Assembly (NCBI GenBank): GCA_002269645.1
Contig: NIVC01001924.1
Span: 124,001-188,000 of the forward strand
Source of the DNA: Macrostomum lignano
Lineage: Eukaryota
Direction of reading: 5' to 3'
Length of the DNA stretch: 64,000 nt
This document shows, in pieces, positions 2,404 through 64,000 of the stretch. Made by a program: the position numbers and the translations under genes. The stretch's first letter is position 1. Every line of letters starts with the position of its first letter. Below the pieces are notes generated by a model. The model worked only from the letters and a program-made list of their open reading frames with translations, made no database searches and was not told the DNA's origin.

Positions 2404-3150
<747 letters not shown>

Positions 3151-3749
3151 CATACATAGAAGTATATACGAGTATAATCAAGCTGAACTAGTTGACTAGA
3201 AACTTTTTGGGTTTATATCGTAAAAATAAATGCAAGTTAAAGCAGTGTATATAAGAACTGATGGTCTATTGTACTTGCTTGTAACAGTACAAAATGTTAA
3301 TTTATTATTGAGCAAAATCATGCCAAACGTGAGTTTGTAATTACTAGATAATTCATTGAAAAAAAGTTGCTAAAAACAGCTAAAGGCGCGTTGAAAAAAC
3401 AAAAATTAAAAGACACACATTGTTGAATTAAAAAAAGCACAGCACATGTTGTCTAATTTTAATAGTCTTTATCGAGATAATGGCTTTGTTTATGGAGTAC
3501 AAAATATAGTTATAAAATGTCTCTACACTTAAGACCGTAGCTTCAAATATCAAATTATAAACGCACTGTTCAACAGCGATGAAGCTAGTATAAAAGGTAT
3601 GAAAAAACAAATAAAAAGTTTATCAATCACGTTTTTATTTAATAAACATTAAAAAATTTAATGAACTTTGTCTATGGAACGAGTGACTTTACTCGTAAAA
3701 CCTTACTGAACTTTAAGAGGGTCAATGCCTCTTCTGAAGTATTTGTCTC

Positions 3750-4263
3750 AACCTGATCTAGGCTTACAGCTACTCCTTCAGGTCTTTGTCCTCAGTCTAA
3801 TCATACGGCTTACAGCTACTCCTTCAGGTCTTTGTCCTCAGACTAATCATACGGCTTATAGCTACTCCTTCAGGTCTTTGTCCTCAGACTAATCATACGG
3901 CTTACAGCTACTCCTTCATGTCTTTGTCCTCAGACTAATCATACGGCTTATAGCTACTCCTTCAGGTCTTTGTCCTCAGACTAATCATACGGCTTATAGC
4001 TACTCCTTCAGGTCTTTGTCCTCAGTCTAATCATACGGCTTACAGCTACTCCTTCAGGTCTTTGTCCTCAGACTAATCATACGGCTTATAGCTACTCCTT
4101 CAGGTCTTTGTCCTCAGACTAATCATACGGCTTACAGCTACTCCTTCAGGTCTTTGTCCTCAGTCTAATCATACGGCTTATAGCTACTCCTTCAGGTCTT
4201 TGTCCTCAGTCTAATCATACGGCTTACAGCTACTCCTTCAGGTCTTTGTCCTCAGACTAATCA
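3750..4263. repeat. 46-bp minisatellite, left half (GGCTTACAGCTACTCCTTCAGGTCTTTGTCCTCAGACTAATCATAC)
   Basis: About 11 tandem units; the array resumes in the same orientation at 16031. Confidence 0.95.
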
Positions 4264-5144: not shown

Positions 5145-8566
<3,422 letters not shown>

Positions 8567-16030: not shown

Positions 16031-16620
16031 GACTAATCATACGGCTTATAGCTACTCCTTCAGGTCTTTGTCCTCAGTCTAATCATACGGCTTACAGCTA
16101 CTCCTTCAGGTCTTTGTCCTCAGACTAATCATACGGCTTACAGCTACTCCTTCAGGTCTTTGTCCTCAGACTAATCATACGGCTTACAGCTACTCCTTCA
16201 GGTCTTTGTCCTCAGACTAATCTTACGGCTTATAGCTACTCCTTCAGGTCTTTGTCCTCAGACTAATCATACGGCTTACAGCTACTCCTTCAGGTCTTTG
16301 TCCTCAGTCTAATCTTACGGCTTATAGCTACTCCTTCATGTCTTTGTCCTCAGACTAATCTTACGGCTTATAGCTACTCCTTCAGGTCTGTCCTCAGACT
16401 AATCATACGGCTTACAGCTACTCCTTCAGGTCTTTGTCCTCAGACTAATCATACGGCTTACAGCTACTCCTTCAGGTCTTTGTCCTCAGCCTGATCTAGG
16501 CTCACAGCTACTCCTTCAGGTCTTTGTCCTCAGCCTGATCTAGGCTCACAGCTACTCCTTCAGGTCTTTGTCCTCAGCCTGATCTAGGCTCACAGCTACT
16601 CATTCAGGTCTTTGTCCTCC
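16031..16620. repeat. 46-bp minisatellite, right half
   Basis: Same unit and orientation as 3750-4263. Confidence 0.95.
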
Positions 16621-23790: not shown

Positions 23791-25336
23791 AACTTTGGAT
23801 TTCAGCAGGTTTTGAGCCCTTGAGGGTCAGGAATTTGATCATTACCGGCTACCCTATACTCAATCTTTAGTTCCTGAGAATTTGCCATAAGTAGCTAGAA
23901 TTTACCCTATAGGAAAAAGTTGTAAAACCGCGGACGGTGTCTGGCGCACTTTTGAAATTTTTCTAAAGCGCAGCGCGCGCACAGGCGTAATAAAGGGTTG
24001 GTAAAAAAGTGCATTGAAGCGCGAAACGTTTTTAAAACAGTTCAAACGTTGTTGGAAATAACAAATAATGCTGAAATAAAAATGGAAATATTTACCAACT
24101 AAACAAATCATTGCATTCAAACAAATAATATTCACTAGAAATACATTTACTTTCTTAAATACATATGCATTAAATGTATTAAGACCACCGGAAAAAGAAA
24201 GACAAAATTAAAATTCTGGAGTTTGAATCCAGACTTATACACAGTATATTCTATCACAATATATCCGAATTTTCTTTCTTTTTTCATTTCTCTATTGCTA
24301 AAAAATACAGTACAGGAAAATTTTTACTCTAAAATAATGGGACTGTGTCCCTTTCACTCGCATTTGTAAAATTTTCCTGAATCTGAATTTTGCATGCATT
24401 CATTCTTACGAGTATGTACTATACATGGTACTACAAAAGCGATGCTTCCACTTGAAGCGGCCAAGCGGGAAAGCTGGAGCCATGAAAGGCGGCGCGTGAT
24501 TATCACATGTACATATGCTAGCTAGTACTACATTTACATGTTAACGAAATGATTCCCCGACGCGGCATTCTATAAACGTACATTGCATGACAGGGGCGCC
24601 CACCAAGAGACAGGAGTGCCAAACAAGAGACAGGGCGCCCACCGAGAGACAGTTGCGCCCACCAACAAGAGACAGCTAGGGCGCCCACCAAGAGACAGGA
24701 GCGCCCACCAAGAGCTAGGGGCGCCCACCATGAGATAATTTGCAGCCAATGGCGCCCACCAAAAGAGACAATGGGCGCCTACCTAAGAGAGACAGCTGGG
24801 TGCCCATCTAGGGACAGGGCGCCCTGCACCTGCATGCAAGAGACGTACACTTTGGTTGTCGCACCGCTACATCATCCGCTATACTTTTGATCGATCTTTC
24901 TGTTCTGCATTAAGCATTGAACTAAAATCGGTCCTGCAGTGATAATATGTAGCGTTGATGTAGTATTGAATTTAGACTTCATATTGCATGTTGGGGTACG
25001 TATGGTTGTTTGTTTGTGAGAGTTTTTATTATTAGCGATCGTAACTACTCGATTTTGTACATCAAATCGAAAAAATTGCATTGCTGTTGATGCTGTAACG
25101 GAATTCTTACAAAGTAATTTATGTAAAACTTTAAAATATAATTTAGTCATTTACTTTAAAAAAGTAAAAATCAAAATACAGAAGTACATGCGCGTACAGG
25201 CGTTCAGTATTCAACGTATTCAAGAAATAATTTTTAATCAGCAATTTGGCGCAACTATGGGTGCCCACGAAGACACCAGATATTGGCGCCGCTTAGGTTA
25301 CACCCCGGATTTAAAATTCCGCCACGGAGTGTCCGC

Positions 25337-26620
25337 ATGTGGGTGAATGCGTGTTCAGCATGTGGGTGAATGCGTATTCTACATGAGGGTGAATGCGTGT
25401 TCAGCATGTGGGTGAATGCGCGTGTTCAGCATGTGGGTGAATGCGTATTCTACATGAGGGTGAATGCGTGTTCAGCATGTGGGTGAATGCGTGTTCTGCA
25501 TGTGGGTGAATGCGTGTTCTGCATGTGGGTGAATGCGTATTCTGCATGAGGGTGAATGCGTGTTCTGCATGTGGGTGAATGCGTATTCTGCATGAGGGTG
25601 AATGCGTATTCTGCATGAGGGTGAATGCGTGTTCTGCATGTGGGTGAATGCGTATTCTGCATGAGGGTGAATGCGTGTTCAGCATGTGGGTGAATGCGTA
25701 TTCTGCATGTGGGTGAATGCGTGTTCTGCATGTGGGTGAATGCGTATTCTGCATGAGGGTGAATGCGTGTTCAGCATGTGGGTGAATGCGTATTCTGCAT
25801 GTGGGTGAATGCGTGTTCAGCATGTGGGTGAATGCGTATTCTGCATGAGGGTGAATGCGTGTTCAGCATGTGGGTGAATGCGTGTTCTGCATGAGGGTGA
25901 ATGCGTGTTCAGCATGTGGGTGAATGCGTGTTCTGCATGAGGGTGAATGCGTGTTCAGCATGTGGGTGAATGCGTGTTCTGCATGAGGGTGAATGCGTGT
26001 TCAGCATGTGGGTGAATGCGTGTTCAGCATGTGGGTGAATGCGTGTTCTGCATGTGGGTGAAAACGTGTTCTGCATGAGGGTGAATGCGTGTTCTGCATG
26101 TGGGTGAATGCGTGTTCTGCATGTGGGTGAATGCGTGTTCAGCATGAGGGTGAATGCGTGTTCTGCATGAGGGTGAATGCGTGTTCAGCATGTGGGTGAA
26201 TGCGTGTTCAGCATGTGGGTGAATGCGTGTTCTGCATGTGGGTGAAAACGTGTTCTGCATGAGGGTGAATGCGTGTTCTGCATGTGGGTGAATGCGTGTT
26301 CTGCATGTGGGTGAATGCGTGTTCAGCATGTGGGTGAATGCGTGTTCTGCATGAGGGTGAATGCGTGTTCAGCATGTGGGTGAATGCGTGTTCAGCATGT
26401 GGGTGAATGCGTGTTCTGCATGTGGGTGAATACGTGTTCTGCATGAGGGTGAATGCGTGTTCTGCATGTGGGTGAATGCGTGTTCTGCATGTGGGTGAAT
26501 GCGTGTTCTGCATGTGGGTGAATGCGTGTTCTGCATGAGGGTGAATGCGTATTCTGCATGAGGGTGAATGCGTGTTCTGCATGTGGGTGAATGCGTGTTC
26601 TACATGAGGGTGAATACGTG
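25337..26620. repeat. 23-bp minisatellite (TGCATGTGGGTGAATGCGTGTTC)
   Basis: Directly visible. Confidence 0.97.
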
Positions 26621-27307
26621 TTTTGCATGTGGGTGCATGAATACATGTTCTGCATGAGCTGGGTGAATGGGTGTTCCACATGTAGGTGAGTGTCATCGAT
26701 AATTCACCACTCGAATCTATCAAGTCAATCGGCCAGTGTGAATGCAGCGTTCATGCACTTCTAGCAGTGGTTTACGTAGCTATGTTCGTAGTGAGCTAAA
26801 AATAAATTTTCGCATTGTGCATTGTGTAGATTTTTGCATGCGAGTAGAAATCTTGTCAGGCATTCGGTTCTAAAAAGGTGGCATGAAGTTTATTTTATGG
26901 TCTTTTATTTATCTACAGGTTAATCAATAGGTAAAATGGATGAGCATCGTAAAGCTTCACAATTAAAATAGCACTTGATTTACTTGTTCGCAAATAGCCT
27001 TTTTATAGTAAAACACTTTTGACGCTGTTCTCAAACTCGGGATCTTTTTAAAAATGATTCACCGCGGTACTACCTTGAGATCAAAATACTCAAAACGGTT
27101 ATTCTTCCTTTAAAGATGGCTCCAATCTGGACCAGTTATAGGGAAATAAGTGATGTCAAGTTGAGTTTATTTCAGTAAATAACTGAACTGCATTGTAGTG
27201 AAGAACTCTATAATAATGTTGTACAGAATTGGAATCAGTAAGAAAGGCATTAAGAGGCAACAGAACTCAAAACCATTGGAATCTTACTGACGAAAGAAAC
27301 AATTACC

Positions 27308-30669: not shown

Positions 30670-43961
<13,292 letters not shown>

Positions 43962-44670: not shown

Positions 44671-46000
44671 ACACCTCTGGCCTATTGTTATCTTGCCGCC
44701 ATGAACAGCCTCTATATATCGTCATTGATAATTATAATAACGAGCATCACCTCGTACTGTAAAGTGTATCAAATAGTGAAAAAACAAATGTAAATCGCTG
44801 ATCATTTCGAAACTGGAAAATTTGTTGAAAATTTCTTTAATATCGAATTATGGTTAATACTGTTAATTAATACTACTCAGAGTAATTGAATCGCACGAGT
44901 ATGAATCATTCTTATTTCAATGCAATATTTTGCGTCCCTCTAGCAAAGATGAAATTTGCTTCTCTTTATTGTCGAAGCGTCGCAAAACAAAATAATTTTG
45001 TTTTAAAAATAAACTTCAGCCCGTGTAACCATTGACAGTTCACTGTTTCACTGTGAACGTACTTGCTTCAATCTAAAGCTTAAATGTAGAAGATAGGCCT
45101 AAAACTTCTACAAATAAGCAAATCAATAAAATATTTATGGCTGTCTCAATTTCATCGTTATATTTTTTCTCGTGCTTTCTTAGAAATAAAGTTCATATCA
45201 CTTTAACTTCAACCAACAGCCGGAGACAAAAAAATAATAAAATTAAAAGTTAAGAAGACATAACGCACAACGAAATTAAATTGACTATCTAACTGTAAGT
45301 GAATCTAAATGGAATATTTATGAAAATAATATTATTATATGATATATTATGCACAAAACAGTTCGGCTTAATCGGAAACTGCATCTCACAATATTATAAC
45401 TACAGTGATAAGCAGGCCAATCGTATCTGGCAAGTGAAATTATTGTCAACAATTTTAACAAAACTGGTTTTAATGAGTTAATAAAAAAAAGTCATTTAAC
45501 CACAAAATAGGTTAAATAAATCATATGGACTGTATTATTTGGCTAGAAAATATACAAAAAAAGCAAAAGTAATCGTTTATAAATGGTATTACAACCTTCG
45601 GCGAATTATAACAACCCTTTTCGTGTAAATTACATAGATTAGATGCAAATTCAATAGCTTGTGCAACTGACTAAAAAGCGCGAGTGCCACTACTTATATG
45701 AGTAGACAAAAATAAAAAAACGGAATAATCAACCTGGAAGTGGATAAGTTCAAACATTTTTTAAAAGTAAAAAATTATGCGCTCATGGAACTACTATTAG
45801 TAATAAGTTTCTTCATAGATTCTGCCGCATTGCACAACAGAAACAAATAGAATACGTTTGCCTGAGAAAATTCTGACAAGTCTGAAAAGTCTGACACCTC
45901 TACTGACAATTAGCGAAAACCTCTAACTACAGTCCGATAGGTTTTCTCTGACACTTGTCCTTAAAAATAGTTTCAGATAATTTCCAATGACAAATAATCT

Positions 46001-46921
46001 GGTTTTGTCTCGCATAGAGGCGCCTAACCGCAGTAACCCCGTGAAACTTGTCTCTGCCTGGCTGAAAGCTTGTAATGAGTGAGTAGGCTGGGTTGGAGGG
46101 TAATAGTGGATCGGGAAGGGCTGTGGGTAGCTGTATAGGAAGGCAGGCCTATACCTGTACCAAGGTGCTCTGACGGTATCCCTCAGGCGCCCTCTGAGCG
46201 TACAGCCAGCGACCCTATTAAAGCTGGAGTGTGCCAGACTTAGCTGCAGGGCTGTCCCGGAGGGGACACAGCGGGAAGGCGCGGGCGCCCATTCCGCTAA
46301 GGAGTGTGCCAGAACCAGGACTGAGTCTGAGCAGGACGAGACCGTTGGCACGGTCACTATAGAAATGGCGGGTTGGCGAAGCAAAGGGTGAAATAGTCCC
46401 GGCGATTAGCCCTCCTGCCGCTTCAAAGATAAGAGACTGTCTGGCAAGAGTACCCGGGGTTTAGTTGGGGGGGAGGCTCCTTCGGGTGGCCACGGCCGTG
46501 GGGGCGGTCAATTGACCGGTTTTTTGGCTTATCTAACCCAGGAGAAGGCACGGGCTTCCCTGAATGGTTCTCTCAACCCCCTCTGGCCCCGGGGAGGTTT
46601 ATGATTTGTACCCGGGGGTGGTGGGCGGTCGGCCTCAGCATGGTAGCCACGGCTCTCGGCCTTCGGGCCATCCCTAATAGGCTAAGGGGTCTATCTAACC
46701 TGGTTTTTGGGCACGGGCTTCCTGACTGGTTCGTCGAACCGCTGTCACTGTCCCCCGGGGAGGTTTGGTTTTTGTGATTCTGCCCAATGTACAGTCCTCT
46801 ACAGTCTAACTTGGCTTTTAGTGTACTTCAGTACACTCCCCATTAGGAAACTTATTTCACTAGTGGCGTAAGAGCCTATTCATTTGGCTGAGGCGCCGGA
46901 GTTACTTATTTAGTTAGTTAG
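46001..46921. mobile_element. 921-bp insertion flanked by a 19-bp direct repeat; probable non-LTR retroelement fragment
   Basis: TTCCAATGACAAATAATCT at 45982-46000 and 46922-46940; GC-rich interior against AT-rich flanks; short TTAG-like tandem tail at the right end. Confidence 0.7.
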
Positions 46922-47109
46922 TTCCAATGACAAATAATCTAAGACTATGATTGACCGAAAAATCTAATTTTAATTTAAAAATCGAATAAAAGCATTAATA
47001 TCTGGGCATGAGCCATCAGGATACTGCAAAATAAAGTTGCTTGCAAAACTACAAGTAAAAAATTATCAGCGACTTTAATCATCCCATTCAGTTAATTAAA
47101 CGGCGCCTT

Positions 47110-49052
47110 TTACTTCCAGATTTTATTAAACAGCTCCATAAAGCTGTCATAAATCATAAACGTGATGCCAACGTCAAGACAGACTCGGCTGAGCCTGGGC
47201 ACCGTGCCCTTGTAGAATCTGCAAAGAGATGATTGAAAACACATTTAAAAAAATATCATTTAAATTTTCACGATTTTTTCTTTGTATTTCTACTGCAAGT
47301 AGAGTACTTAAAAGTGCATCATTCTTGTTTATATACGCGCAATATTTTTTGCAATTTCTACTGTAAGTAGGGTAAGAATATTCGCAAAATTGTTTATCTT
47401 GGAAGACCTGTATATACCGGTAGAATCCGCAGAAAGAACTACACGTTAACTCTTGCAGTCTGAGTCCTTGATGATGCACACAAGAGCTCACACAGAGTGT
47501 ACAGCAGCTTAAAACAAACAAATTATTTCCAAGAAACCCAAGCTTCACTCACGCCTTGAGTCCCTCCTCCCGCCAGATCTTGACGAAGCAGTGCGCGGTG
47601 CTGCGGTACTTGTGCGCCTCCAGGCCCTGCATTCGAGTCTTCACCACATCGATCGGCGTGTTGCCGAACACGGAAGCCGCCCCGGCCACTGCGCCAAACA
47701 TGCCAGTCAGCAGCTTCGGGATCGGCCTCGTGTTGTCCGTGTCACCGCGGTAGGCCCTGTACCAGTCCTTCAGCGACTCCACCACCAGGAAGCGGATGGC
47801 CTGGTTCGAGCCCTGCTTCATCATCGTGGCCGTCAAGCCCTGGTAGCAGCCCCGAAGCCCCTGCTCGCGCACAATCTCCCGGACACCGTGGAAGAAGCCG
47901 CGGAACTTCGGGTTCGCCGAGTTCTGGTCGTTGATGAACTTCACCTTCACCGTCTCCATGGGCGTCACGGCGAAGATCGCCTCGCAGATGCCGGCGCCGA
48001 GGCCGCACAGAAACTTCCGACCGGTGCTCAGGTTGCCCTGCGCGTCCGAGTTGCGCTTCTTGAACTCCTCGAATGCGCCGAACCTTTGGCGGGGTTGTTA
48101 GATGGCGAGGCTTTTGGCTGGCTCAGCGCACGCATACTTACTCCTGCTGACTACCCTAACCATCTATGTAGAAAGCTAACAAGCTGGCGAGGCATTTCGC
48201 CAGCAAAAGTTACTCCTGCTGACTACCCGCATAACACCAGAGACGATCAGTTAAAACTCAAGTAAGTATCAATAAACTTCGAAGAATCGTGACTTGCAGA
48301 TCCTAACCTACAGAACCCTATTTGCAATTCCTAACTAACGAATATCTAATCTAAAAATCACAACCCACAAATCCCAACCTAAAAATCCCAATCTACAAAT
48401 CCCAAAGCTCAAATCCCAAAACGCCCCGCGCGTCCGAGGTGCGCTTCTTGAACTCCTCGAATGCGCCAAACTTTTGGCGGGGTTGTTAGATGGCGAGGTT
48501 TTTGGCAGCCTAAGCGCACGCATAGTTACTCTTGCTGACTACCCGATAAACATCAAAATCTATGATGCGAAACCCTCAACCAAATCGCAACTTACTAATT
48601 AACCTACAAATCCCAAATCCCAAATCCCATCAACAAGCCCCTCTCTCACCTCACAGCGGACTTGGGAATCGAGCCATACAGCAGCACACTCAGGCCTCGG
48701 TACAAGCCGAAGAAGCCCCGCTCCCTGACCGTCACCTTCACGCAGTCGATCGGCCCCTTGTACCGCTTCTGGGCGCCCACCTTCTCGTCCAACTGCAGCT
48801 GGGTCTTCACGTACTCTGTTGGGAATGTGATGCAGATCTCCATGCCTCCCGTGATGCCGCCTGAGGGACAGAGTTTGGCGTGGCTTTCTGGCTTGGCCTC
48901 TTAATATAAACATTTTCCATTTCATAAATCCATCTCTCACCTGCAATAATGCCTTTAAGGCTCTTGTTGCTGCTTCCAGAAGCAGCTGCTGCAGCTGCAG
49001 ACACTCTCTGGTTTGGTCTGCCAGCGCTGAACACCAGGCCACGGTCTGACAT
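47110..49052 (-). CDS. SLC25A1: Mitochondrial citrate/tricarboxylate carrier, copy A (320 aa, 4 exons)
   Basis: Exons 49052-48941, 48860-48650, 48083-47553 and 47218-47110; GT-AG with phases 1/2/2. Carrier motifs [19 protein letters not shown] and [10 protein letters not shown]; [14 protein letters not shown] and [16 protein letters not shown] are typical of SLC25A1. Confidence 0.95.
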
Positions 49053-52000
49053 GATGAGAGCTGCAGGAGATGCAAAATGGGATTTCCAAACTCACAATAA
49101 AAAATTGGATAAATTGATTAGGCTAAGGTTGTACAATTCTATAAGCTCAGTGCCATCATTTAGTAGAAGAAGCATTTTTAACTGCTCTTTTTATTAAAAT
49201 AAAAAAAGATTAAAATGCTGCGTTTTTAGATTTAGATTTAAAGTAAAGAAATAAAATTCTTTTGAAAAACAATTAATTATCTTGAAAGGTTTGCTAAAAC
49301 TCCTGTCAAAAAACTGTTTTTTTAAAGTATGATCATTATATAATACAAAATATTTTATTACTTTTGTACATTTGTCCCATGTTTTAGTAGATATAGAGGT
49401 AATCTAAAACTTTAAAGCCTAGATAGAAAATTAACAATGCTTATGCAGTAGGGCTCATATTTGTTCTAAGAAAATATTAACATTTTTGTAAGTCAAATTC
49501 CTGCCAAATAACAGTTATACAAATATTTTGTTTTAATATGATGATATTTGTTTTAACTAAATGTTGTTTAAACAAATGTAACCCAAGCCAATAGAGAGAG
49601 GTTTCAGTTAGTATAAATACAAGGTGAAATACTAAACATTTTCCTTAACTCCTTTGTTGGGTTCAATACTCAGTAACCTAGAAATTAAGATTTCTCTGGT
49701 CTTACTTTCTTAGTTATTTAAGCAGGATTACAAGTTTGGAAAGACCATATTGGATAAAAAGGGCGTTTTGCCAGTGCAGTTAAGTAGGGATTACCAAACA
49801 AGCATTTTGCTAAACAGAAAAGGTGGATTGCCCAGTAAGGAGGGAGGATTCCCTAAGAATAGATCTAGGCTATTACAAGCATAATATAGTATTAAATTGG
49901 GAAAGACAGTATTAAAGCTGGAAACCCCTTGGTTAGTGGAATGCCATGTTTAGACTAAGTAATTTAGAAATTAGTAGTAATTATTAGTATAGTAGTAAGC
50001 AATGTATTGCCACTTGGGAACTGAAGCTACCAGGGTAACTCGTACTGACAATAGCCCATATATGTACATATAGGTTTAATTATTGGGATTCTTAGGATTA
50101 GAAATAATAGATTTAGTAGTACAATCTAGTGATTAAAATGGTGAAATTTAGACAAGGAGTAAATAGGCCTGCTACAACTTGGTGGCATTAGTAACTAGGA
50201 ACAATTATACCTATAACACTTATTTAGTGTTGGATTTCCATCCTCCAATTATTTGTACTTTCTGTTTTGCAATTCAGCCTTGTACTTTTTAGTTAGCTAG
50301 CTCCCTTTGTCTTGAAGAAGCCACACACAATGATTGTAGCAATGGTATGCAAGTCTGGCTTGTCTTAAATATGATCAGCTCTGATCTTTCTCATTTTATT
50401 ATCCCCAAGCTCATCGACTTGGATTGCTTCACGACCTATAGCCATAGCTTTTCATTAGAGTTTATGGCTTGACATGGCTATTTGTATGTAGCAATAATAA
50501 TAAATAAAACTCTGCCTTTATACTTAAGGCTAGTATATAATATATTAGGTGCTATATAAAAATAGGTGCTATAATGTACACTATATATAATAATTGTATA
50601 TTACATTTTATGGTGATTTGCATTAATCAAATTATAACAAAATTACTAGGCCTAAGTTGAAACTGAAATTTATTACAAAGACTATTTCATGCTTGTGAAG
50701 TTCTTGCTTATTATTTAGAGTTAAACTGTCAAGGCACTAGTCAGTCAAAGTATCATTCATCATCAAAGACTTAGAAATATGATCAGTGCATATTACAGCA
50801 TATAAAATATTTTGTAGCTATAGAAAATAAGATAAATATGTCAAGATACTACTATAGCTACTATAGCCAAGTCCTAAATTAAAGGAGATAAGCTATTTAG
50901 GCTAATAAAATTTAAACTATTTTGGCAATAAACATTAAGTTAATGACAACAATAATCCTTGAAGTATTGTTTACTTGAGATAAAAATTACAGCTGCTGGC
51001 ACTGGCAGTGGCAGGCGTGGCACTGGCAGCTTAAATTAGGATTGCAAAATAAATTCAAAAGGAGGGAAATGATTCAAGTAAAAATTAGTAAACCATATAG
51101 GGTTTAACGATTTTTGGGATTGAATCAGCATTTAAACTTTTTGTAGCCTATGCCATGGCCTACGCTACATAACTATTTTAAAGATTACTAGATTAAATTT
51201 AACATTAGTACATTACCCCTTACTGAGAGAGATTGATTACTTTCGTAATCAATATATATTCAGTTCAGATGTTACAAACAAAAAATTAATTAATAATTTT
51301 TGGATAGTGGCCGTTTCTTGCTGACGGTAAGAGCTGGCCCATAATAAAGTCGAAACAATATGTTTGACTATTGTTTGACTATTTGATTAAAGTAGTAGTC
51401 AAGTAGTGTACACGTTTAAATATCGCTGATTGAAGCATTTGAATACTGATGTTGACTCTTGTCCAAACTTTAACAAAGCATTTTACGTCAAAGTTTTTTT
51501 GACGCGTATTTTAACAGTACACAGAGAACAGTTTTAAAATTTTAATATATAAAATAGATTAAGCTAAAAAACTTATATTTTTTTATTGCAAATTTTTCTC
51601 TTTCTTTTAAAATGTCCCATTTACACGATAGCGGACTAGTTTTCCAGATTTTTAATAACCGGTTTTTTAGTTTCAACTTTTTGTGAGTTAGTTTTGATTC
51701 AAATGAAAAAATATGATCGCCATAAAAATGTGTTTTATTTTTTTGACAACAATTTCTAATCTGGCAGCAGCATGGCGCAGGACAACAAAAATCGTGCTGC
51801 GCCACAATCGTTGACCACAATCAGCGACTGCAGAACTAAATAATAATGATACTGTTAATTAATCACGACTTTAGGTCTAGGTCTAGGACAAGAAAGAAGT
51901 AGAGGCTAGCAGTCTTCATTTATAATATATTTGTCTACTATCTAGTTTTGATATTAAATCTTTATATCTGTGTCGTTTATTGTTAGTTATTTTGTTGCAG

Positions 52001-53210
52001 ATCCCTCTACACTTGTGTTTTGCTATTTTAATTAGTTGTTTTGCACTGTAAACTGGTTGTCAGTCAAAAATATGGAAATAAATATAAGACGATGACTATA
52101 TCACTTTAATCATAAGGGTGGTCATTGCATTATGGTTAAAGCTAACCTTGTTAAAAGATGATTGCTAGTGCCTAGAGTCAAGAATATTAATATACTTGAG
52201 TTAGACTTCATATTTGGCCATAGTTTGGAAGGCAACATGTACTCCAGGGTTTCCTGGCATACCATAGTTTCGTTTGGATTGTGTCTTATTGTTCGCCCAA
52301 GTTTAATGCAGGAAAAAATGATGAGACCTTGTTTGTACACTAGGTTTGTGTGCGAATGTATGGTTTAGGTTTTTATTACCATCCATTACAGAATAATTTA
52401 GTAATATCTAATCTAATAAAATCAATAGTTTGTATTATTGTATGTATTAACTTTGATCTAAAACAATAATCATTTTAACCACTATGACACTAGATAAAAA
52501 CCTAAAGGTTTTCTTGTTTTGATAACATTTTTAGCATTTTTATAAACTAGAAACACTTAGCCTAAAAATATACCCTTTATAGTCTATGTCTTATGATAGT
52601 CATATTGACTGTTAAACATTTGATAGTCTGGAATGTGGCCTTGATTGCAAAAAAATTAGTATACTTTTGCCCCGAGACTCAAGTCAAGTGCCTACTTGGC
52701 ATTGGCATAAAGAATTTTCAAGCCCAATATTAGTATGCCTATTTAAATTAAAACATGATGAGCCTAGGCCTTATATTATATATTGTATCCTGTATAGTGC
52801 ATGCAATTTTAAATTTTATAGTATAGTATATTAGTATAATATACATTGTTTGCAAAAAAACTAATCAAGTTTAGCCTTAGGTTTAGTATATTTGCCATTT
52901 ATATAAATAAAAATATTTGTAATTTTTTATAAAATTCTTTAAGTAGAAAATATACCAAGGCATTTGTGGTAGCAACCAAAATGAAAACAGTGTTTAAAAC
53001 ATTTGACTACCAAATTTTATTGCCTGTGACAGTATGACAATAATTACCTACTATTGCTTGCCATTTTTCTTCCAACAATATGACTGCTAGCTTTTATTGC
53101 AGAAGAAAATTATGTAGTTACAGTTTAATTTGTTTTAAAAATCACCAATGAATTATGTAGCATTAAAGCCAGCATGCGAATTTTATTTTGCAGCACCTGC
53201 AGCTCTCGTC

Positions 53211-54773
53211 ATGTCAGACCGTGGCCTGGTGTTCAGCGCTGGCAGACCAAACCAGAGAGTGTCTGCAGCTGCAGCAGCTGCTTCTGGAAGCAGCAACAAG
53301 AGCCTTAAAGGCATTATTGCAGGTGAGAGATGGATTTATGAAATGGAAAATGTTTATATTAAGAGGCCAAGCCAGAAAGCCACGCCAAACTCTGTCCCTC
53401 AGGCGGCATCACGGGAGGCATGGAGATCTGCATCACATTCCCAACAGAGTACGTGAAGACCCAGCTGCAGTTGGACGAGAAGGTGGGCGCCCAGAAGCGG
53501 TACAAGGGGCCGATCGACTGCGTGAAGGTGACGGTCAGGGAGCGGGGCTTCTTCGGCTTGTACCGAGGCCTGAGTGTGCTGCTGTATGGCTCGATTCCCA
53601 AGTCCGCTGTGAGGTGAGAGAGGGGCTTGTTGATGGGATTTGGGATTTGGGATTTGTAGGTTAATTAGTAAGTTGCGATTTGGTTGAGGGTTTCGCATCA
53701 TAGATTTTGATGTTTATCGGGTAGTCAGCAAGAGTAACTATGCGTGCGCTTAGGCTGCCAAAACCTCGCCATCTAACAACCCCGCCAAAAGTTTGGCGCA
53801 TTCGAGGAGTTCAAGAAGCGCACCTCGGACGCGCGGGCGTTTTGGGATTTGAGCTTTGGGATTTGTAGATTGGGATTTTTAGGTTGGGATTTGTGGGTTG
53901 TGATTTTTAGATTAGATATTGGTTAGCTAGGAATTGCAAATAGGGTTCTGTAGGTTAGGATCTGCAAGTCACGATTCTTCGAAGTTTATTGATACTTACT
54001 TGAGTTTTAACTGATCGTCTCTGGTGTTATGCGGGTAGTCAGCAGGAGTAACTTTTGCTGGCGAAATGCCTCGCCATCTTGTTAGCTTTCTACATAGATG
54101 GTTAGGGTAGTCAGCAGGAGTAAGTATGCGTGCGCTGAGCCAGCCAAAAGCCTCGCCATCTAACAACCCCGTCAAAGGTTCGGCGCATTCGAGGAGTTCA
54201 AGAAGCGCAACTCGGACGCGCAGGGCAACCTGAGCACCGGTCGGAAGTTTCTGTGCGGCCTCGGCGCCGGCATCTGCGAGGCGATCTTCGCCGTGACGCC
54301 CATGGAGACGGTGAAGGTGAAGTTCATCAACGACCAGAACTCGGCGAACCCAAAGTTCCGCGGCTTCTTCCACGGTGTCCGGGAGATTGTGCGCGAGCAG
54401 GGGCTTCGGGGCTGCTACCAGGGCTTGACGGCCACGATGATGAAGCAGGGCTCGAACCAGGCCATCCGGTTCCTGGTGGTGGAGTCGCTGAAGGACTGGT
54501 ACAGGGGCTACCGCGGTGACACGGACAACACGAGGCCGATCCCGAAGCTGCTGACTGGCATGTTTGGCGCAGTGGCCGGGGCGGCTTCCGTGTTCGGCAA
54601 CACGCCGATCGATGTGGTGAAGACTCGAATGCAGGGCCTGGAGGCGCACAAGTACCGCAGCACCGCGCACTGCTTCGTCAAGATCTGGCGGGAGGAGGGG
54701 CCGCTTGCGTAAGCAATGTGCACTACTATTACTACTACTAGTACTACTAGTACTACTACTTCTACTACTACTA

Positions 54774-54820
<47 letters not shown>

Positions 54821-54963
54821 GTAGTCTTACGGCTTTAAAATGTTAACATTGCAGATTCTACAAGGGCACGGTGCCTCGTCTCAGCCGAGTCTGCCTGGAC
54901 GTTGCCATCACGTTTATGATTTATGACAGCTTTATGGAACTGTTTAACAAGCTTTGGAATTAG
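53211..54963 (+). CDS. SLC25A1: Mitochondrial citrate/tricarboxylate carrier, copy B (320 aa, 4 exons)
   Basis: Exons 53211-53322, 53403-53613, 54178-54708 and 54855-54963; same motifs; ends FNKLWN*. Confidence 0.95.
54721..54822. repeat. (CTA)n microsatellite in the last intron of copy B only
   Basis: Directly visible. Confidence 0.95.
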
Positions 54964-55869: not shown

Positions 55870-57150
55870 GACAGCTCACTCTTTCCTCAAACTGCTCACT
55901 CTTTTTCCTCAGACTGCTCACTCTCTTTCCTCAGACTGCTCACTTTCTTTCCTCAGACTGCTCACTCTCTTTCCTCAGACTGCTCACTTTCTTTCCTCAG
56001 ACTGCTCACTCTCTTTCCTCAGACTGCTCACTCTCTTTCCTCAGACTGCTCACTTTCTTTCCTCAGACTGCTCACTCTTTTTCCTCAGACTGCTTACTCT
56101 CTTTCCTCAGACTGCTCACTTTCTTTCCTCAGACTGCTCACTTTCTTTCCTCAGACTGCTCACTCTCTTTCCTCAGACTGCTCACTCTTTTTCCTCAGAC
56201 TGCTCATTCTCTTTCCTCAGACTGCTCATTCTCTTTCCTCAGACTGCTCACTCTCTTTCTTCAGAGTGCTCACTCTTTTTCCTCAGACTGCTCACTCTCT
56301 CCTCAGACTGCTCACTCACTTTCCTCAGACTGCTCACTCTCTTTCCTCAGACTGCTCACTTTCTTTCCTCAGACTGCTCACTTTCTTTCCTCAGACTGCT
56401 CACTCTCTTTCCTCAGACTGCTCACTCTTTTTCCTCAGACTGCTCATTCTCTTTCCTCAGACTGCTCATTCTCTTTCCTCAGACTGCTCACTCTCTTTCT
56501 TCAGAGTGCTCACTCTTTTTCCTCAGACTGCTCACTCTCTCCTCAGACTGCTCACTCACTTTTCTCAGACTGCTCACTCTTTTTCCTCAGACTGCTCACT
56601 CTCTTTCCTCAGACTGCTCACTCTCTTTCCTCAGACTGCTCACTCTTTTTCCTCAGACTGCTCACTCTCTTCCTTCAGAGTGCTCACTCTATTTTTCTCA
56701 GTCTGCTCACTCTCTCCTCAGACTGCTCACTCTCTTTCCTCAGACTGCTCACTCTCTTTCCTCAGACTGCTCACTCTCTTTCCTCAGACTGCTCACTCTC
56801 TTCCTTCAGAGTGCTCACTCTATTTTTCTCAGTCTGCTCACTCTATTTTTCTCAGTCTGCTCACTCTCTCCTCAGACTGCTCACTCTCTTTTCTCAGACT
56901 ACTCATTGTCTTTCCTCAGACTGCTCACTCTCTTTCCTCAGACTGCTCACTCTCTTTCCTCAGACTGCTCACTCTCTTTCCTCAGACTGCTCACTCTCTT
57001 TCCTCAGACTGCTCACTCTCTTTCCTCAGACTGCTCACTCTCTTCCTTCAGAGTGCTCACTCTATTTTTCTCAGTCTGCTCACTCTCTTTTCTCAGACTA
57101 CTCATTGTCTTTCCTCAGACTGCTCACTCTCTTCTCAGACTGCTCACTCT
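55870..57150. repeat. 22-bp minisatellite (CTCAGACTGCTCACTCTCTTTC) with higher-order repeats
   Basis: Directly visible. Confidence 0.96.
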
Positions 57151-58279
57151 CAAGAGGAGTGCTCAATGAATTTTCTGTAGAGTGCTCAGTCTTTTTTCTG
57201 CAGAGTGCTTACTCCCGTTTTAGGAGTGCTCACTTCTATCCAGCGCTCACTTTATCACAAACCTCTATTTTTCTATCCTCATCTTTGAGCACAGGAAACT
57301 TTAACGCAATTCTCATTAATAATTTATAGTTCTTCAAGTTTATTGCGATCTCAAGACCACAGTAGACTTTCACGAGTTCACAGTTATTTTGATGTAGATG
57401 GCTCATTAATTATTAATTTTATACGGCAATTAGAGCTTCGGGGTAATCTACGTTGATTTTAAGGGTTTCCACCTTTTTCAATGTAATTCTTGATGTCGTG
57501 GTAGGTCGCCTGTAATTAATGTTATTTTTTATTATAGGCCGCACACACAACTTCAGCAAGGTAATTTGTATTCCAGCATTGTCTCTAGCTACTTGTCTGC
57601 ATGTAGGTGAGCCTGCATCTGCAGTGTGTTTCAATTGTTCTGCCAGTTGTGTCCAAGAGCGCGCATGCGTGTGTGTGGTCTGGCAATCTTACTACACAAT
57701 TAATGAGTGCCCCGCAGTGCAGATTGGCAACTGCTTGAGAACACGGCTTGTAGGGGGATCGTCACTTCTAATAAATAATTCACTTTCGCTGCGATGGTAG
57801 AATTGCGAAACACAGCATGGAGGCTGCTGTATGACACAACGGGCGGGCAATGAATGTCTGTCTGTCTGTTTCAGCGCATGGAATTGATGAGCGATCGGGT
57901 CATCTCATCATTGGCTGTGCGCTCTCATTAATCATTTAACACTCACTCGGTGGCTGCGGGGGGGTCGTCCCTTGATCTTGTCACCGGTATATAAGACTTA
58001 ATTCTTTCTGAGCCAAGTTTACTGTTTCGATCAGAGCCACTCTGAAGTATAAGAACTTGAATGAGCCCATTGTCGCAACTGCGGGGTGAGTAACTATTGA
58101 ATGTTTCAATAATGTCTTTTCTATCATAGTCATTCGAGAAAGAAAGATATTGGCGCTCCTTAGTCTAGCTGTTTTGTGTTCGATTATAAATGATGAAACG
58201 GAATCACTTGGTTGTGTAGGCAGCCGTTGATTTCTAAATGGTTCGTTTGTGGGGCTTTTAGAAAGAGGGGATTTGGCAC

Positions 58280-60092
58280 ACAGGGCCTTTAGCACCGGGG
58301 ATTTAGCATCAGAGGATTTAGCATCAGGGGATTTAGCATCAGGGGATTTAGCATCAGAGGATTTAGCATCAGAGGATTTAGCATCAGAGGATTTAGCACC
58401 AGAGGATTTAGCATCAGGGGATTTAGCACCAGAGGATTTAGCATCAGAGGATTTAGCATCAGAGGATTTAGCATCAGAGGATTTAGCATCAGGGGATTTA
58501 GCATCAGGGGATTTAGCATCAGGGGATTTAGCACCAGCGGATTTAGCATAGGGGATTTAGCATCAGAGGATTTAGGATTAGGGGATTTAGCACCAGGGGA
58601 TTTAGCACAGGGGATTTAGCACCAGAGGATTTAGCACAAGGGATTTATCATCAGGGGATTTAGCACCAGAGGATTTAGCATCAGAGGATTTAGCATCAGA
58701 GGATTTAGCATCAGAGGATTTAGCATCAGAGGATTTATCATCAGGGGATTTAGCATCAGAGGATTTAGCATCAGGGGATTTAGCATCAGGGGATTTAGCA
58801 CCAGGGGATTTAGCATCAGGGGATTTAGCACCAGAGGATTTAGCATAGGGGATTTAGCATCAGAGGATTTAGCACCAGAGGATTTAGCATCAGGGGATTT
58901 AGCACCAGAGGATTTAGCATCAGAGGATTTAGCATCAGAGGATTTAGCATAGGGGATTTAGCACCAGGGGATTTAGCATCAGGGGATTTAGCACCAGAGG
59001 ATTTAGCATCAGAGGATTTAGCATCAGAGGATTTAGCATCAGAGGATTTAGCATCAGGGGATTTAGCATCAGGGGATTTAGCACCAGAGGATTTAGCATC
59101 AGGGGATTTAGCATCAGGGGATTTAGCATCAGAGGATTTAGCATAGGGGATTTAGCACCAGGGGATTTAGCATCAGGGGATTTAGCATCAGAGGATTTAG
59201 CACCAGGGGATTTAGCATCAGGGGATTTAGCACCAGAGGATTTAGCATAGGGGATTTAGCATCAGAGGATTTAGGATTAGGGGATTTAGCACAGGGGATT
59301 TAGCACCAGAGGATTTAGCACAGGGGATTTAGCATCAGAGGATTTAGCACCAGGGGATTTAGCACAGGGGATTTAGCATCAGAGGATTTAGCACCAGGGG
59401 ATTTAGCACAGGGGATTTAGCACCAAAGGATTTAGCACCAAAGGATTTAGCATCAGGGAATTTAGCATCAGGGGATTTAGCACAGGGGATTTAGCACCAA
59501 AGGATTTAGCACAGGGGATTTAGCACAGGGGATTTAGCATCAGAGGATTTAGCACCAGGGGATTTTGCACAGGGGATTTAGCATCAGAGGATTTAGCACC
59601 AGGGGATTTAGCACAGGGATTTAGCACCAAAGGATTTAGCACCAAAGGATTTAGCATCAGGGAATTTAGCATCAGGGGATTTAGCACAGGGGATTTAGCA
59701 CCAAAGGATTTAGCACAGGGGATTTAGCACCAAAGGATTTAGCATCAGGGGATTTACCACCAGGGGATTTAGAATCAGGGGCTTTAGCACCAGGGGATTT
59801 AGCACCAGGGGATTTAGCACAGGGGATTTAGCACCAAAGGATTTAGCATCAGGGGATTTACCACCAGGGGATTTAGAATCAGGGGCTTTAGCACCAGGGG
59901 ATTTAGCACCAAAGGATTTAGCACAGGGGATTTAGCACCAAAGGATTTAGCATCAGGGGATTTACCACCAGGGGATTTAGAATCAGGGGCTTTAGCACAG
60001 GGGATTTAGCACCAAAGGATTTAGCACACAGGGCTTTTAGCACCAGTGGCTTTAGCACAGGGGATTTAGCACCAGGGGCTTTAGCACCAGGG
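58280..60092. repeat. 15-bp minisatellite (GGGGATTTAGCACCA / GAGGATTTAGCATCA)
   Basis: Directly visible. Confidence 0.96.
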
Positions 60093-60915: not shown

Positions 60916-63908
60916 ATGAGAGACATGGTGTCACCCGGTGCACTAAACAGCGAGACCAGCATGGCGCTTAGCCAGAGCATGGATAGCGTCAATGCCTGTG
61001 TGGACGACGAGGTGAGACGGATTGAGAGTCAAAAAATTCATTTAATCACGAGCTTACATGTACTCGACAGTCTTCTTTAATTTGTTGAATTTCGATCTAA
61101 TTTAAATCCGCGCCAAAAAGTTTATCAAACGAAAAAGTAGAAACATTAAAATTCTGTCTTGAAGTTGAATCGATAAGTTGTTTTAATTGTTTTTAAACTT
61201 TGAGTTTTCATAACGCAAATAGTTGTGGCGCTAATTTCAGTTTGATTCAAATTAACAAACAATTGTACCGATAATAACTATATTTAGGGAAGACTGTCGC
61301 GTATTCGTACATTATTTTTCTCACCGTTTCTCTGTCAAAAATTTACAAATTACTAACAAGAAATTCAAATTTACAAGTAATTACTAAATTAGTAATTGTC
61401 TTAATAATATAGTTGCTGCTTTGTTCTATTCCTCAGGATGAATGCTTGGTAAAAATGCGAATGTTATATAGGCATATTGTTGGGCGGATTTCTAAAATTA
61501 ATTTGAAGACTCAATATTAAACAAATCCAATATAATAATTTTTTGAAAATTTTGGTTTAAAATTTGAATAACTTTAAATGTTAGTGTTGAACATCGATTC
61601 TTGGAAATGCATTTCTAGAAAGGAGTTCAATAAACCACACTCATAGCAGACGCAACTATATAAATTAGACAGTTCTTGATCACGATCACTTGGTTTATTA
61701 AATTACATTTAGGTTAAGCTAAGTAAGTTAGGTTTTATGAGTCTGTAAATTTGTTTGTAAATTGTTGCTTTTTAAATTAGATTTTTCCTTGCAGATTTAA
61801 ACTACGATTATGAATCTCTGAAACCGGTCATCCTACTTTTAAGTAGCATTGGCAGAACACTTCTTGCTTCTAGCAAAGTTAATTCATTAAAACAGAAATT
61901 GGTAAATTTCTATAATTGTTGCTTTTAAATATCAGGTGCGAACCCTGTTCGTCAGCGGGCTGCCAATGGACACGAAGCCTCGAGAGCTGTACCTGTTGTT
62001 TCGAGCTTTCAAGGTGAGTCACCGAATTTCAAATATTATACATTATACGGTTCCAATGCAAAATTTCTCTAAAAATCTATCCATAAAATTTCAGGGCTTT
62101 GAAAATGCTCAGTTGAAAAGTTTTGCTCAAAAATTGGGCAAACTCATGTGTGTGAGTAATCTGTGCATGGGATGCATATGTATGTACATTTCATGTAGCT
62201 TTTTGTTATAGTTTTGTAAAATAATCATTCAATTTTTTCCAGCCAGTCGGTTTTGTCACTTTCAAGAGTCGGGTGGACGCTGAGGTTGCAAAACAGGAAT
62301 TGCAGGTAACTGAAATTGTGTATCAGTTTGTGTCAGCTAGGTGGTACCAATTTGTGTCAGTTGGTGCCAATTTGTGTCAGTTGGTGCCAATTTGTGTCAG
62401 TTGGTGCCAATTTGTGTCAGTTAATGCCAATTTGTGTCAGTTGGTGCCAATTTGTGTCAGTTGGTGCCAATTTGTGTCAGTTGGTGCCAATTTGTGTCAG
62501 TTGGTGCAAATTTGTGTCAGTTGGTGCCAATTTGTGTCAGTTGGTGCCAATTTGTGTCAGTTGGTGCCAATTTGTGTCAGTTGGGGCCAATTTGTGTCAG
62601 TTGGTGCCAATTTGTGTCAGTTGGTGCCAATTTGTGTCAGTTGGTGCCAATTTGTGTCAGTTAGGGCCAATTTGTGTCAGTTGGTGCCAATTTGTGTCAG
62701 TTGGTGCCAATTTGTGTCAGTTGGTGCCAATTTGTGTCAGTTGGTGCCAATTTGTGTCAGTTGGGGCCAATTTGTGTCAGTTAATGCCAATTTGTGTCAG
62801 TTGGTGCCAATTTGTGTCAGTTGGTGCCAATTTGTGTCAGTTAATGCCAATTTGTGTCAGTTGGTGCCAATTTGTGTCAGTTGGTACCAATTTGTGTCAG
62901 TTGGTGCCAATTTGTGTCAGTTGGTGCCAATTTGTGTCAGTTGGTGCCACCAATTTGTGTCAGTTGGTGCCAATTTGTGTCAGTTGGTGCCAATTTGTGT
63001 CAGTTGGTGCCAATTTGTGTCAGTTAATGCCAATTTGTGTCAGTTAATGCCAATTTGTGTCAGTTAATGCCAATTTGTGTCAGTTAATGCCAATTGTGTC
63101 AGTTGGTGCCAATTTGTGTCAGTTGGTGCCAATTTGTGTCAGTTGGTGCCAATTTGTGTCAGTTAATGCCAATTTGTGTCAGTTGGTGCCAATTTGTGTC
63201 AGTTGGTGCCAATTTGTGTCAGTTGGTGCCAATTTGTGTCAGTTAATGCCAATTTGTGTCAGTTGGTGCCAATTTGTGTCAGTTAATGCCAATTGTGTCA
63301 GTTGGTGCCAATGTGTGTCAGTTGGTGCCAATTTGTGTCAGTTAATGCCAATTTGTGTCAGTTAATGCCAATTTGTGTCAGTTAATGCCAATTGTGTCAG
63401 TTGGTGCCAATTTGTGTCAGTTGGTGCCAATTTGTGTCAGTTGGTGCCAATTTGTGTCAGTTAATGCCAATTTGTGTCAGTTGGTGCCAATTTGTGTCAG
63501 TTGGTGCCAATTTGTGTCAGTTGGTGCCAATTTGTGTCAGTTAATGCCAATTTGTGTCAGTTGGTGCCAATTTGTGTCAGTTGGTGCCAATTTGTGAAAA
63601 ATTTGAGAAGGATTTTAGAAACTGGCTAGCTTATCATCAAACTTTGGGAAAGTTTAATGTAATGCCTTTTCATCTCCATATGCATTGCAGTTTTGACTAT
63701 TTAAATTTATAGTTAATTTTCATCTCCCGAGCAATAAAACAAAATTTAATTCTTCGGCCTTCAAAATTCTATCAGGGCGTAAAATTTGATATGGAGCTGC
63801 CGCAGACTCTGCGCCTGGAGTTCGCCAAGACCAACAACAAAGTGGCCAAGCCGAAGCTGGGCCAAGGAGTCGGCGGTCACCACCAGGCTATGCTGCCCAT
63901 GTCTGGCC
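60916..63908 (+). CDS. cpo: RRM RNA-binding protein, couch potato / RBPMS family (5' part; continues beyond window)
   Basis: Exons 60916-61011 (..[17 protein letters not shown]), 61936-62013 ([26 protein letters not shown]), 62095-62151, 62243-62305 ([21 protein letters not shown]) and 63776-63908 ([27 protein letters not shown]); all GT-AG and in frame. Confidence 0.93.
62325..63595. repeat. 20-bp minisatellite (CCAATTTGTGTCAGTTGGTG) filling a cpo intron
   Basis: Starts ~20 bp after the donor at 62305. Confidence 0.97.
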
Positions 63909-64000
63909 GTAAGTTTTGATACGGTTGAACATATTTGAACATATTTGAAACATATATAATTAGACTTCAGCCTGTGATATAAATTTCAGCTTTAAAAAAC

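Follow-up and report, generated by a model that had tools for sequence, protein, structure and literature searches.

A head-to-head pair of citrate-carrier genes in Macrostomum lignano with a near-identical core, probably homogenized by gene conversion, and diverged ends

How can two neighboring genes be almost identical over most of their length, introns included, and then end in unrelated last introns and far-diverged last exons? The question is raised by a pair of mitochondrial citrate-carrier (SLC25A1-type) genes, genes A and B, that lies in a 64,000-nt stretch of the Macrostomum lignano genome (assembly GCA_002269645.1, contig NIVC01001924.1, positions 124,001 to 188,000 of the forward strand; hereafter the window, in which positions are counted from the first letter). 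An earlier note on this DNA had described two intact copies placed head-to-head around a spacer of ~4.1 kb, and had proposed that an old inverted duplication was followed by homogenization of its arms by gene conversion. We found the inverted repeats by a repeat search of the window, aligned the copies pairwise in gene orientation, and spliced and translated both genes. The divergence between the copies, together with a comparison of the same pair at two further loci, makes this proposal highly probable.

Layout, core, and tails of the pair

Each gene has four exons with canonical GT..AG splice sites and a 963-nt coding sequence (CDS) of 320 codons, and both CDSs are intact. The genes are oriented head-to-head, with their 5' ends facing a spacer of 4,106 nt (Table 1), as the earlier note had it. 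The exon structures are independently supported by the deposited transcript-based annotation, the proteins of which match the spliced ones: PAA62528.1 equals "LI" followed by the product of A, and PAA62529.1 equals "PAALV" followed by the product of B.

The carrier family PF00153 (Mito_carr) matched three stretches of the 320-amino-acid copy B (E 6.2e-70), and copy A is the same over these repeats except at 6 residues. The signature P-x-[DE]-x-x-[KR] is present in every repeat of both copies (PTEYVK at 51, PMETVK at 149, and PIDVVK at 251). A homologue search gave full-length identities of 70-80% to named citrate/tricarboxylate transport proteins of arthropods, molluscs, annelids, and planarians, with bit scores of 490-546, compared with 90-101 for the best solved structures (UCP1/UCP2 and AAC; E 1e-24 to 7e-28). 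The three signature repeats and the far higher scores against named citrate carriers justify the prediction that A and B are orthologues of SLC25A1, the citrate carrier (CTP; scheggia in Drosophila). In the collection searched, which contains no other Macrostomum protein, the nearest matches outside M. lignano (P0003-P0008, from the Logan and JGI samples ERR7672905 and ERR14707600) have 76-82% protein identity. We found no paper on the identifiers Mlig005712, Mlig017033, Mlig028833, and Mlig010069, and no published work on Macrostomum and gene conversion that addresses this locus.

The repeat search returned two inverted pieces, 47562-48426/53835-54699 (865 nt, 99%) and 48500-49078/53185-53763 (579 nt, 99%), which together make up a single arm of ~1,515 nt interrupted solely by a pair of 1-nt indels. 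Introns included, A and B show 7 substitutions and 2 one-base indels over the ~1,500 nt that stretch from the ATG to a point 11 nt short of the end of exon 3. Identity over the core is about 99.2-99.4%, and 646 nt of this sequence is intronic (introns 1 and 2, of 80 and 566 nt). Exons 1 and 2 and intron 1 show no differences at all, and exon 3 shows 3 before the boundary. The final 192 nt of the core are free of A/B differences, after which 6 of the following 7 bases differ: A reads GGA CTC AAG GC/gtgagt (GLKA) and B reads GGG CCG CTT GC/gtaagc (GPLA), the slash marking the splice junction. The abrupt stop noted previously is therefore real. At the other end, identity had been said to begin ~15 bp before the ATG. 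The near-identical core with few differences was confirmed, but its edge has to be redrawn: similarity reaches 26 nt upstream of the ATG, and because this leader is only 88% similar and holds 3 fixed differences, a level like that of exon 4, the truly homogenized tract probably begins at about -2. The A/B differences adjacent to the edges lie in the last 11 nt of exon 3 and at positions -3, -16, and -18.

Beyond the core the two genes are very different. Exon 4 differs at 13 of 109 positions (88% identity), and the differences are mostly synonymous. By the Nei-Gojobori method (NG86), nonsynonymous (dN) and synonymous (dS) divergence are 0.049 and 0.53 in exon 4 (dN/dS ~0.09), and 0.0016 and 0.010 in codons 1-280. 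The per-exon contrast in dS that the earlier note had put forward as a check (~0.01 in exons 1-3 and ~0.5 in exon 4) was thus obtained as predicted. Exon 4 is, to judge from its sequence, under purifying selection. The C-terminal regions differ as reported (..EEGLKAFYKG..DVGI..KIWK in A and ..EEGPLAFYKG..DVAI..KLWN in B), by 5 amino acids if the last codons of exon 3 are counted in, namely L283P, K284L, G302A, I318L, and K320N. Each tail departs, conservatively, from the metazoan consensus EGP[KR]AFYKG..DVGI in only one or two places.

The last introns, described as unrelated with lengths of ~335 and ~146 bp, measure 334 and 146 nt, and they, the upstream regions, and the 3' flanks of A and B are unalignable (~50% identity). 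In a sensitive blastn comparison, similarity beyond the core was limited to exon 4 with ~20 nt of acceptor region (129 nt, 85%) and to the 26 nt before each ATG (88%). Apart from those 26 nt, the two halves of the spacer show no residual palindromy when compared with each other. The spacer presumably holds both promoters or outrons; it contains no open reading frame of at least 100 amino acids wholly within it and gave no Rfam match.

Two further observations concern the tails. Gene A has a canonical AATAAA at 47122-47127 (-), which overlaps codons 316-317 (AAT AAA) and lies 9 nt before the stop, whereas gene B reads AAC AAG at these codons and lacks the motif; the two genes may therefore differ in polyadenylation or in the length of their 3' untranslated regions (UTRs). 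Intron 3 of gene B consists mostly of an (ACT)33 microsatellite (54722-54820) that starts 14 nt past the boundary of the core and varies in length by 30 nt among contigs.

Table 1. Coordinates of the gene pair and associated features in the window
Feature	Position	Strand	Details
Gene A, citrate-carrier (SLC25A1-type) CDS, 320 amino acids	47110..49052	-	exons 49052-48941, 48860-48650, 48083-47553, 47218-47110; stop TAA
Gene B, citrate-carrier CDS, 320 amino acids	53211..54963	+	exons 53211-53322, 53403-53613, 54178-54708, 54855-54963; stop TAG
Putatively homogenized core, arm A	47562..49078	-	26 nt leader, exons 1-2, introns 1-2, exon 3 minus its last 9 nt; from inverted repeats I1 and I2 and alignment
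Putatively homogenized core, arm B	53185..54699	+	from inverted repeats I1 and I2 and alignment
Putatively unconverted tail of gene A	47110..47561	-	last 9 nt of exon 3, intron 3 (47552-47219, 334 nt, 34% GC), exon 4
Putatively unconverted tail of gene B	54700..54963	+	last 9 nt of exon 3, intron 3 (54709-54854, 146 nt), exon 4
Probable old homology, A side	47111..47239	-	exon 4 and ~20 nt of acceptor region, 85% to 54834-54962; inverted repeat I4
Non-palindromic spacer	49079..53184	.	4,106 nt, 30% GC; between the 5' ends of A and B
Partial duplicate of the intron 2/exon 3 junction inside intron 2 (pseudo-exon)	48423..48544	-	92% to 48035-48156; direct repeats D5-D7, inverted repeats I3, I5-I7

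Core haplotypes in three loci

We compared six copies, namely A and B from each of three contigs of the Mlig_3_7 assembly: the window contig (W or L002, NIVC01001924.1; copies Aw and Bw), L001 (NIVC01002224.1; A1 and B1), and L003 (NIVC01000725.1; A3 and B3). From 43196 to 64000, the window matches L002 at 100%. A protein cluster built at 90% identity contains 10 M. lignano entries, all of A type or B type, which map to these contigs. Each contig carries the same head-to-head pair with the spacer in the same orientation, at ~97-98.5% identity to the others. The sample consists of three loci from a single inbred, karyotypically abnormal line. The DV1 line carries extra large chromosomes, M. lignano has been described as a hidden polyploid, and Mlig_3_7 holds 180 Mb of duplicated blocks at at least 95% identity (PMC5730564; PMC10468722). 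In view of this hidden polyploidy and the extensive duplicated blocks, the three loci are likely to be haplotypes and/or homeologues.

The older ML2 assembly also gives both tail types. One ML2 entry, A0A1I8IT66 (P0125), is a chimeric model of 618 amino acids in which core exons 3 and 2, in antisense, precede the complete sense gene A. The head-to-head layout is thus present in ML2 as well, and the model itself is an annotation error in the public record.

Within the core (ATG to +1499), we found 0 fixed differences between A and B and 18 shared polymorphisms, for which both states occur among the A copies and among the B copies; 6 further differences are private and 1 falls in neither class. 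The absence of fixed differences extends from -2 to +1499. The sequences on either side gave the opposite result. The 285 nt upstream contain 128 fixed and 0 shared differences, the last 9 nt of exon 3 plus intron 3 contain 72 and 0, and exon 4 contains 10 and 0; differences among the six copies in the flanks are only fixed or private. Indels are among the shared core events: a 14-bp deletion is found in A3 and B1, and a 9-bp indel in A1, A3, and B3.

Tails group strictly by type, whereas cores pair across types (A1-Bw, A3-B1, and Aw-B3). The nearest relative of every core is a core of the opposite type on another contig. A1 and Bw are separated by 2 substitutions in 1,489 nt, A3 and B1 (which share the 14-bp deletion) by 4 in 1,476 nt, and Aw and B3 by 7. 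The mean distance between A and B cores (9.8 substitutions) is smaller than that within types (12.7). Conversely, A1 and A3 have identical tails (0/452) and cores that are 1.41% apart, and Bw and B1 have identical tails (0/552) and cores that are 0.95% apart. The four-gamete test gave Rm = 4 in the core, that is, at least 4 exchanges.

The relationship among the three contigs changes along the locus. From 46946 to 49484 it is W that stands apart from the other two, and from 49784 onward it is L003; the topology is stable in the flanks and scrambled inside both cores. The switch in the spacer, at ~49.5-49.8 kb, may reflect either true crossing-over of haplotypes or a change of phase introduced in assembly. 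The L003 spacer also carries extra segments of 51 nt and 421 nt at window positions 50539 and 51251. If the contigs are correct, polymorphism is shared between arms across loci. If the contigs or chromosomes are recombinant in the spacer, the data reduce to three haplotypes, X, Y, and Z, whose arms are 0.13-0.47% apart. The tails agree with such re-phasing (Aw and B3 are the divergent copies on their respective sides), but the core and flank trees still disagree after it, in that the Y and Z cores are the most distant and their flanks are nearly identical. Either phasing would require arm-to-arm transfer after the split of the three loci, because a haplotype that belongs with an A tail cannot be brought to a B tail by mis-phasing between loci.

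Gene conversion, its alternatives, and its precedents

The explanation that we regard as highly probable is an old inverted duplication with recurrent arm-to-arm gene conversion that is limited by the extent of homology. A single citrate-carrier gene would have been duplicated head-to-head to give paralogues A and B. The duplication would be old, to judge from the dS of ~0.5 in exon 4 and from the saturation of the last introns, the upstream regions, and the 3' flanks. Recurrent ectopic, non-reciprocal conversion without net crossover would then overwrite a tract of ~1.5 kb, introns included. Exchange between the copies cannot delete genes, because they are inverted. The tract would be bounded by usable homology, since the sequence past both of its edges is unrelated. 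Conversion tracts need homology at both ends, so that a homogenized block with sharp, slowly eroding edges would be produced, and the differences clustered at the edges may represent this erosion. Exon 4 would escape because it is a 109-nt island of 88% identity behind non-homologous introns of different lengths. We infer that this limit of homology, not selection, sets the boundary.

Polymorphism shared between paralogues is considered the most powerful diagnostic of ectopic conversion (PMC3924832). The 0 fixed and 18 shared core polymorphisms, together with nearest neighbors that are always of the other type, point to exchange between arms after the three loci had diverged, and with the dS contrast they bear out the earlier proposal of an old inverted duplication homogenized by conversion. 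The exchange may be intrachromosomal or may take place between homologous or homeologous chromosomes; the present data fit either route. A different kind of rearrangement, inversion (flip-flop) of the spacer, was rejected for the three loci, as A tails always occur with A-type upstream sequence.

Several explanations dispense with recurrent conversion. Purifying selection alone could in principle hold the core identical, given the strong conservation of the carrier (70-80% amino-acid identity among phyla), but introns 1 and 2 and the synonymous sites are as identical as the coding sites, and exon 4, which is equally constrained in its protein, has a dS of ~0.5; this refutes selection as the sole cause and leaves it next to no probability. 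A recent inverted duplication of the whole gene is a very unlikely starting point, whether an unlinked paralogue later supplied the 3' end and 5' flank of one copy or the ends diverged with unusual speed. Nothing specific speaks for it. All 10 M. lignano proteins of the cluster have an A-type or B-type exon 4, so that no third, donor type was found; upstream and downstream flanks are both unrelated, which would call for two independent replacements; and the mostly synonymous differences in exon 4 reflect elapsed time and not fast protein evolution. We regard it as extremely improbable that errors of assembly, such as chimerism, collapse of contigs, or a spurious inverted duplicate, produced the palindrome or made its arms look nearly identical, even though the genome is highly repetitive and hidden-polyploid and the window consists mostly of minisatellites. 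The same layout is found on three separate contigs of 120-646 kb, with a unique spacer of 4.1-4.6 kb and consistently different tails, and in ML2, which gives both tail types and the head-to-head A0A1I8IT66 model, although all of these assemblies go back to a single PacBio data set. Artefactual palindromes would lack an asymmetric spacer or distinct, intact last exons. Faulty assembly and an unlinked source of one exon 4, which the earlier note had named as grounds for giving up its proposal, thus find no support in these data.

Two other possibilities deserve more weight, although we consider both unlikely. In one, a lone past event, either a long conversion or a partial re-duplication on top of an older paralogue, replaced the core not long before the loci diverged, there is no ongoing exchange, and the apparent sharing of polymorphisms arose from read correction, Pilon polishing, or mis-phasing of contigs. 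Polishing did use multi-mapping short reads and RNA sequencing (RNA-seq) reads, and the contig topology does switch in the spacer. However, the same full-length core haplotypes each occur with one A tail and with one B tail, on whichever contig, and mis-phasing between loci is unable to move haplotypes between A arms and B arms. Haplotype Z is defined by 9 linked single-nucleotide polymorphisms and the 14-bp deletion across ~700 nt, and haplotype Y shows the same kind of sharing. Linkage over 700 nt that includes indels is not what random short-read polishing would yield, nor could such polishing create 99.4% identity from diverged sequence. Moreover, the arm is only 1.5 kb long, and PacBio reads hence anchor in the unique tails. 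In the other, which we likewise hold to be doubtful, the pair is in effect one gene with two last exons that is encoded as two genes; selection keeps the tails distinct, and core haplotypes are also exchanged between arms on homeologous chromosomes. The LK/PL and G/A tail differences are fixed in all three loci, and only gene A carries the AATAAA over its last codons. What is kept distinct may then be the C-terminal transmembrane helix 6 and the 3' end, with conversion keeping the transport core identical, and homeologous exchange, if it occurs, would account for the finding that each core has its nearest relative on the opposite arm of a different contig. The pattern can be explained without selection for distinct tails; that the tails are free to specialize, as the earlier note suggested, is a hypothesis.

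Some features of the data weigh against recurrent conversion between the arms. All three contigs derive from one PacBio data set, and some of the shuffling of variants among six copies that are 99% identical is possibly artefactual. Mlig_3_7 was assembled with Canu (errorRate 0.04) and polished by Pilon with Illumina and RNA-seq reads (PMC5730564); such reads multi-map among the six cores, and single variants could have been shuffled. The contigs may be phase-switched in the spacer at ~49.5-49.8 kb. The comparison covers only the three loci of this one M. lignano line. Finally, base composition is ambiguous. The introns in the putatively converted tract have a GC content of 42-46%, compared with 34-35% for intron 3, and GC content at third codon positions (GC3) is 0.87-0.91 in exons 2-3, compared with 0.66-0.69 in exon 4, but GC3 of exon 1, which lies in the same tract, is only 0.46, and there is no clear signature of GC-biased conversion.

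Taken as a product of recurrent conversion, the citrate-carrier pair is a clean but ordinary case of concerted evolution with the classic pattern of a palindromic pair. In Drosophila, the Hsp70Aa/Ab paralogues share silent polymorphisms, and in Amy-p/Amy-d only the coding block evolves in concert, with independent evolution of the flanks (PMC3924832). Like these, the M. lignano genes form a small, tightly linked inverted pair with shared polymorphism, and A and B resemble each other more closely than their flanking sequences do. Unlike these, the block takes in two introns, stops inside the coding region, and leaves the whole last exon unconverted; the gene is a flatworm mitochondrial solute carrier, and three homeologous or haplotypic loci within a single assembly, instead of population or sister-species samples, supply the evidence.

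In the human gamma-globin genes HBG1/HBG2, a conversion tract reportedly ends sharply on its 3' side, close to a simple repeat in intervening sequence 2 (IVS2), as Slightom et al. are said to have described in 1980. There, as here, the block comprises the 5' part of the gene with an intron, the edge is abrupt, old divergence lies beyond it, and a simple repeat adjoins it, although the globin copies are direct tandem repeats and those of M. lignano are inverted. To give the (ACT)33 microsatellite a causal role in the boundary would be pure conjecture by analogy. The earlier note had likened the pair to Y-chromosome palindromes. In the human Y palindromes P1-P8, arm-to-arm conversion is said to have been described by Rozen et al. 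in 2003. The Y palindromes have arms of 9 kb to 1.45 Mb at 99.97% identity, lie on a non-recombining chromosome, and carry testis gene families. The likeness holds for the mechanism only: a unique spacer lies between inverted arms whose identity would be maintained by intrachromosomal conversion. The M. lignano arms, by contrast, are 1.5 kb long and 99.2-99.4% identical, are of autosomal type, have their edges within a gene, and lie at a locus that is able to recombine with its homologues. They thus fall outside the class of large palindromes of the sex-chromosome type (arms of at least 8 kb, at least 99.9% identity, whole genes), and small palindromic pairs such as Drosophila Hsp70 and Amy are closer precedents.

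Other features of the locus and meaning for M. lignano

Intron 2 contains a partial duplicate of its own junction with exon 3. The duplicate, 122 nt long (~92% identity), joins 75 nt of intron sequence to the 47 nt with which exon 3 begins and is found in all six copies; in gene B it lies at ~53719-53837 (reference copy 54105-54226). A third, shorter copy of its 5' motif, GGGTAGTCAGCAGGAGTAAC, is located at 48227. The duplicate is unlikely to be a real alternative exon, as its acceptor AG is shifted by 1 nt, its donor is poor, its length is 48 nt in A and 47 nt in B, and it is missing from the annotated proteins.

An acceptor-like CCTGCAG lies 8 nt before the ATG in 6/6 copies and fits the published spliced-leader trans-splice motif [T/C]TNCAG. 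A second such site, TTGCAG, 17 nt upstream, is present only in gene B of the window; L001 and L003 read CATG at this position, and gene A reads GCAT. The annotated start of A directly follows the site at -8, and that of B lies 15 nt upstream of the ATG. A trans-splice acceptor as the 5' edge of the core is only suggestive, given that the B annotation starts elsewhere and the extra TTGCAG is unique to window copy B.

A 985-bp insertion with a clean junction lies at 45948-46932, ~177 nt downstream of the gene A stop; L001 and L003 lack it. The insert is not tandemly repetitive, and we found no other copy of it in the window and related contig sequence. Long arrays of minisatellites and microsatellites, with repeat periods of 2-46 nt and individual lengths of up to 2 kb, take up much of the window (for example, 2405-3160, 6458-8261, 17216-19111, 25335-26689, 40566-42740, 55879-57151, 58266-60092, and 62342-63596). 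Some arrays are strongly strand-biased (GC skew 0.75 at 6-8 kb), and one 46-nt unit is common to 3761-4263 and 16031-16619. These arrays fit the simple and tandem repeat content of 15% reported for M. lignano. The next annotated gene downstream of B, at ~60916-64000 (+) (L002 17721-21768), encodes a 307-amino-acid product with no Pfam match on record; it lies amid 15-nt and 20-nt minisatellites and extends past the end of the window.

The pair leaves the general understanding of gene conversion unchanged, being a known kind of case that is newly located here. What it offers is a compact natural tract, probably of conversion, with base-pair-sharp edges in three near-identical loci of a hidden polyploid, which would lend itself to estimates of how fast conversion proceeds and where its tracts end in a flatworm amenable to transgenesis. 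For work on the citrate carrier of M. lignano, RNA interference, in situ probes, CRISPR guides, and short-read expression estimates would hit up to six near-identical copies, and A and B can be told apart only by exon 4 and the 3' UTR. Where conversion acts, dating of duplicates by their divergence would underestimate their ages in the M. lignano genome.

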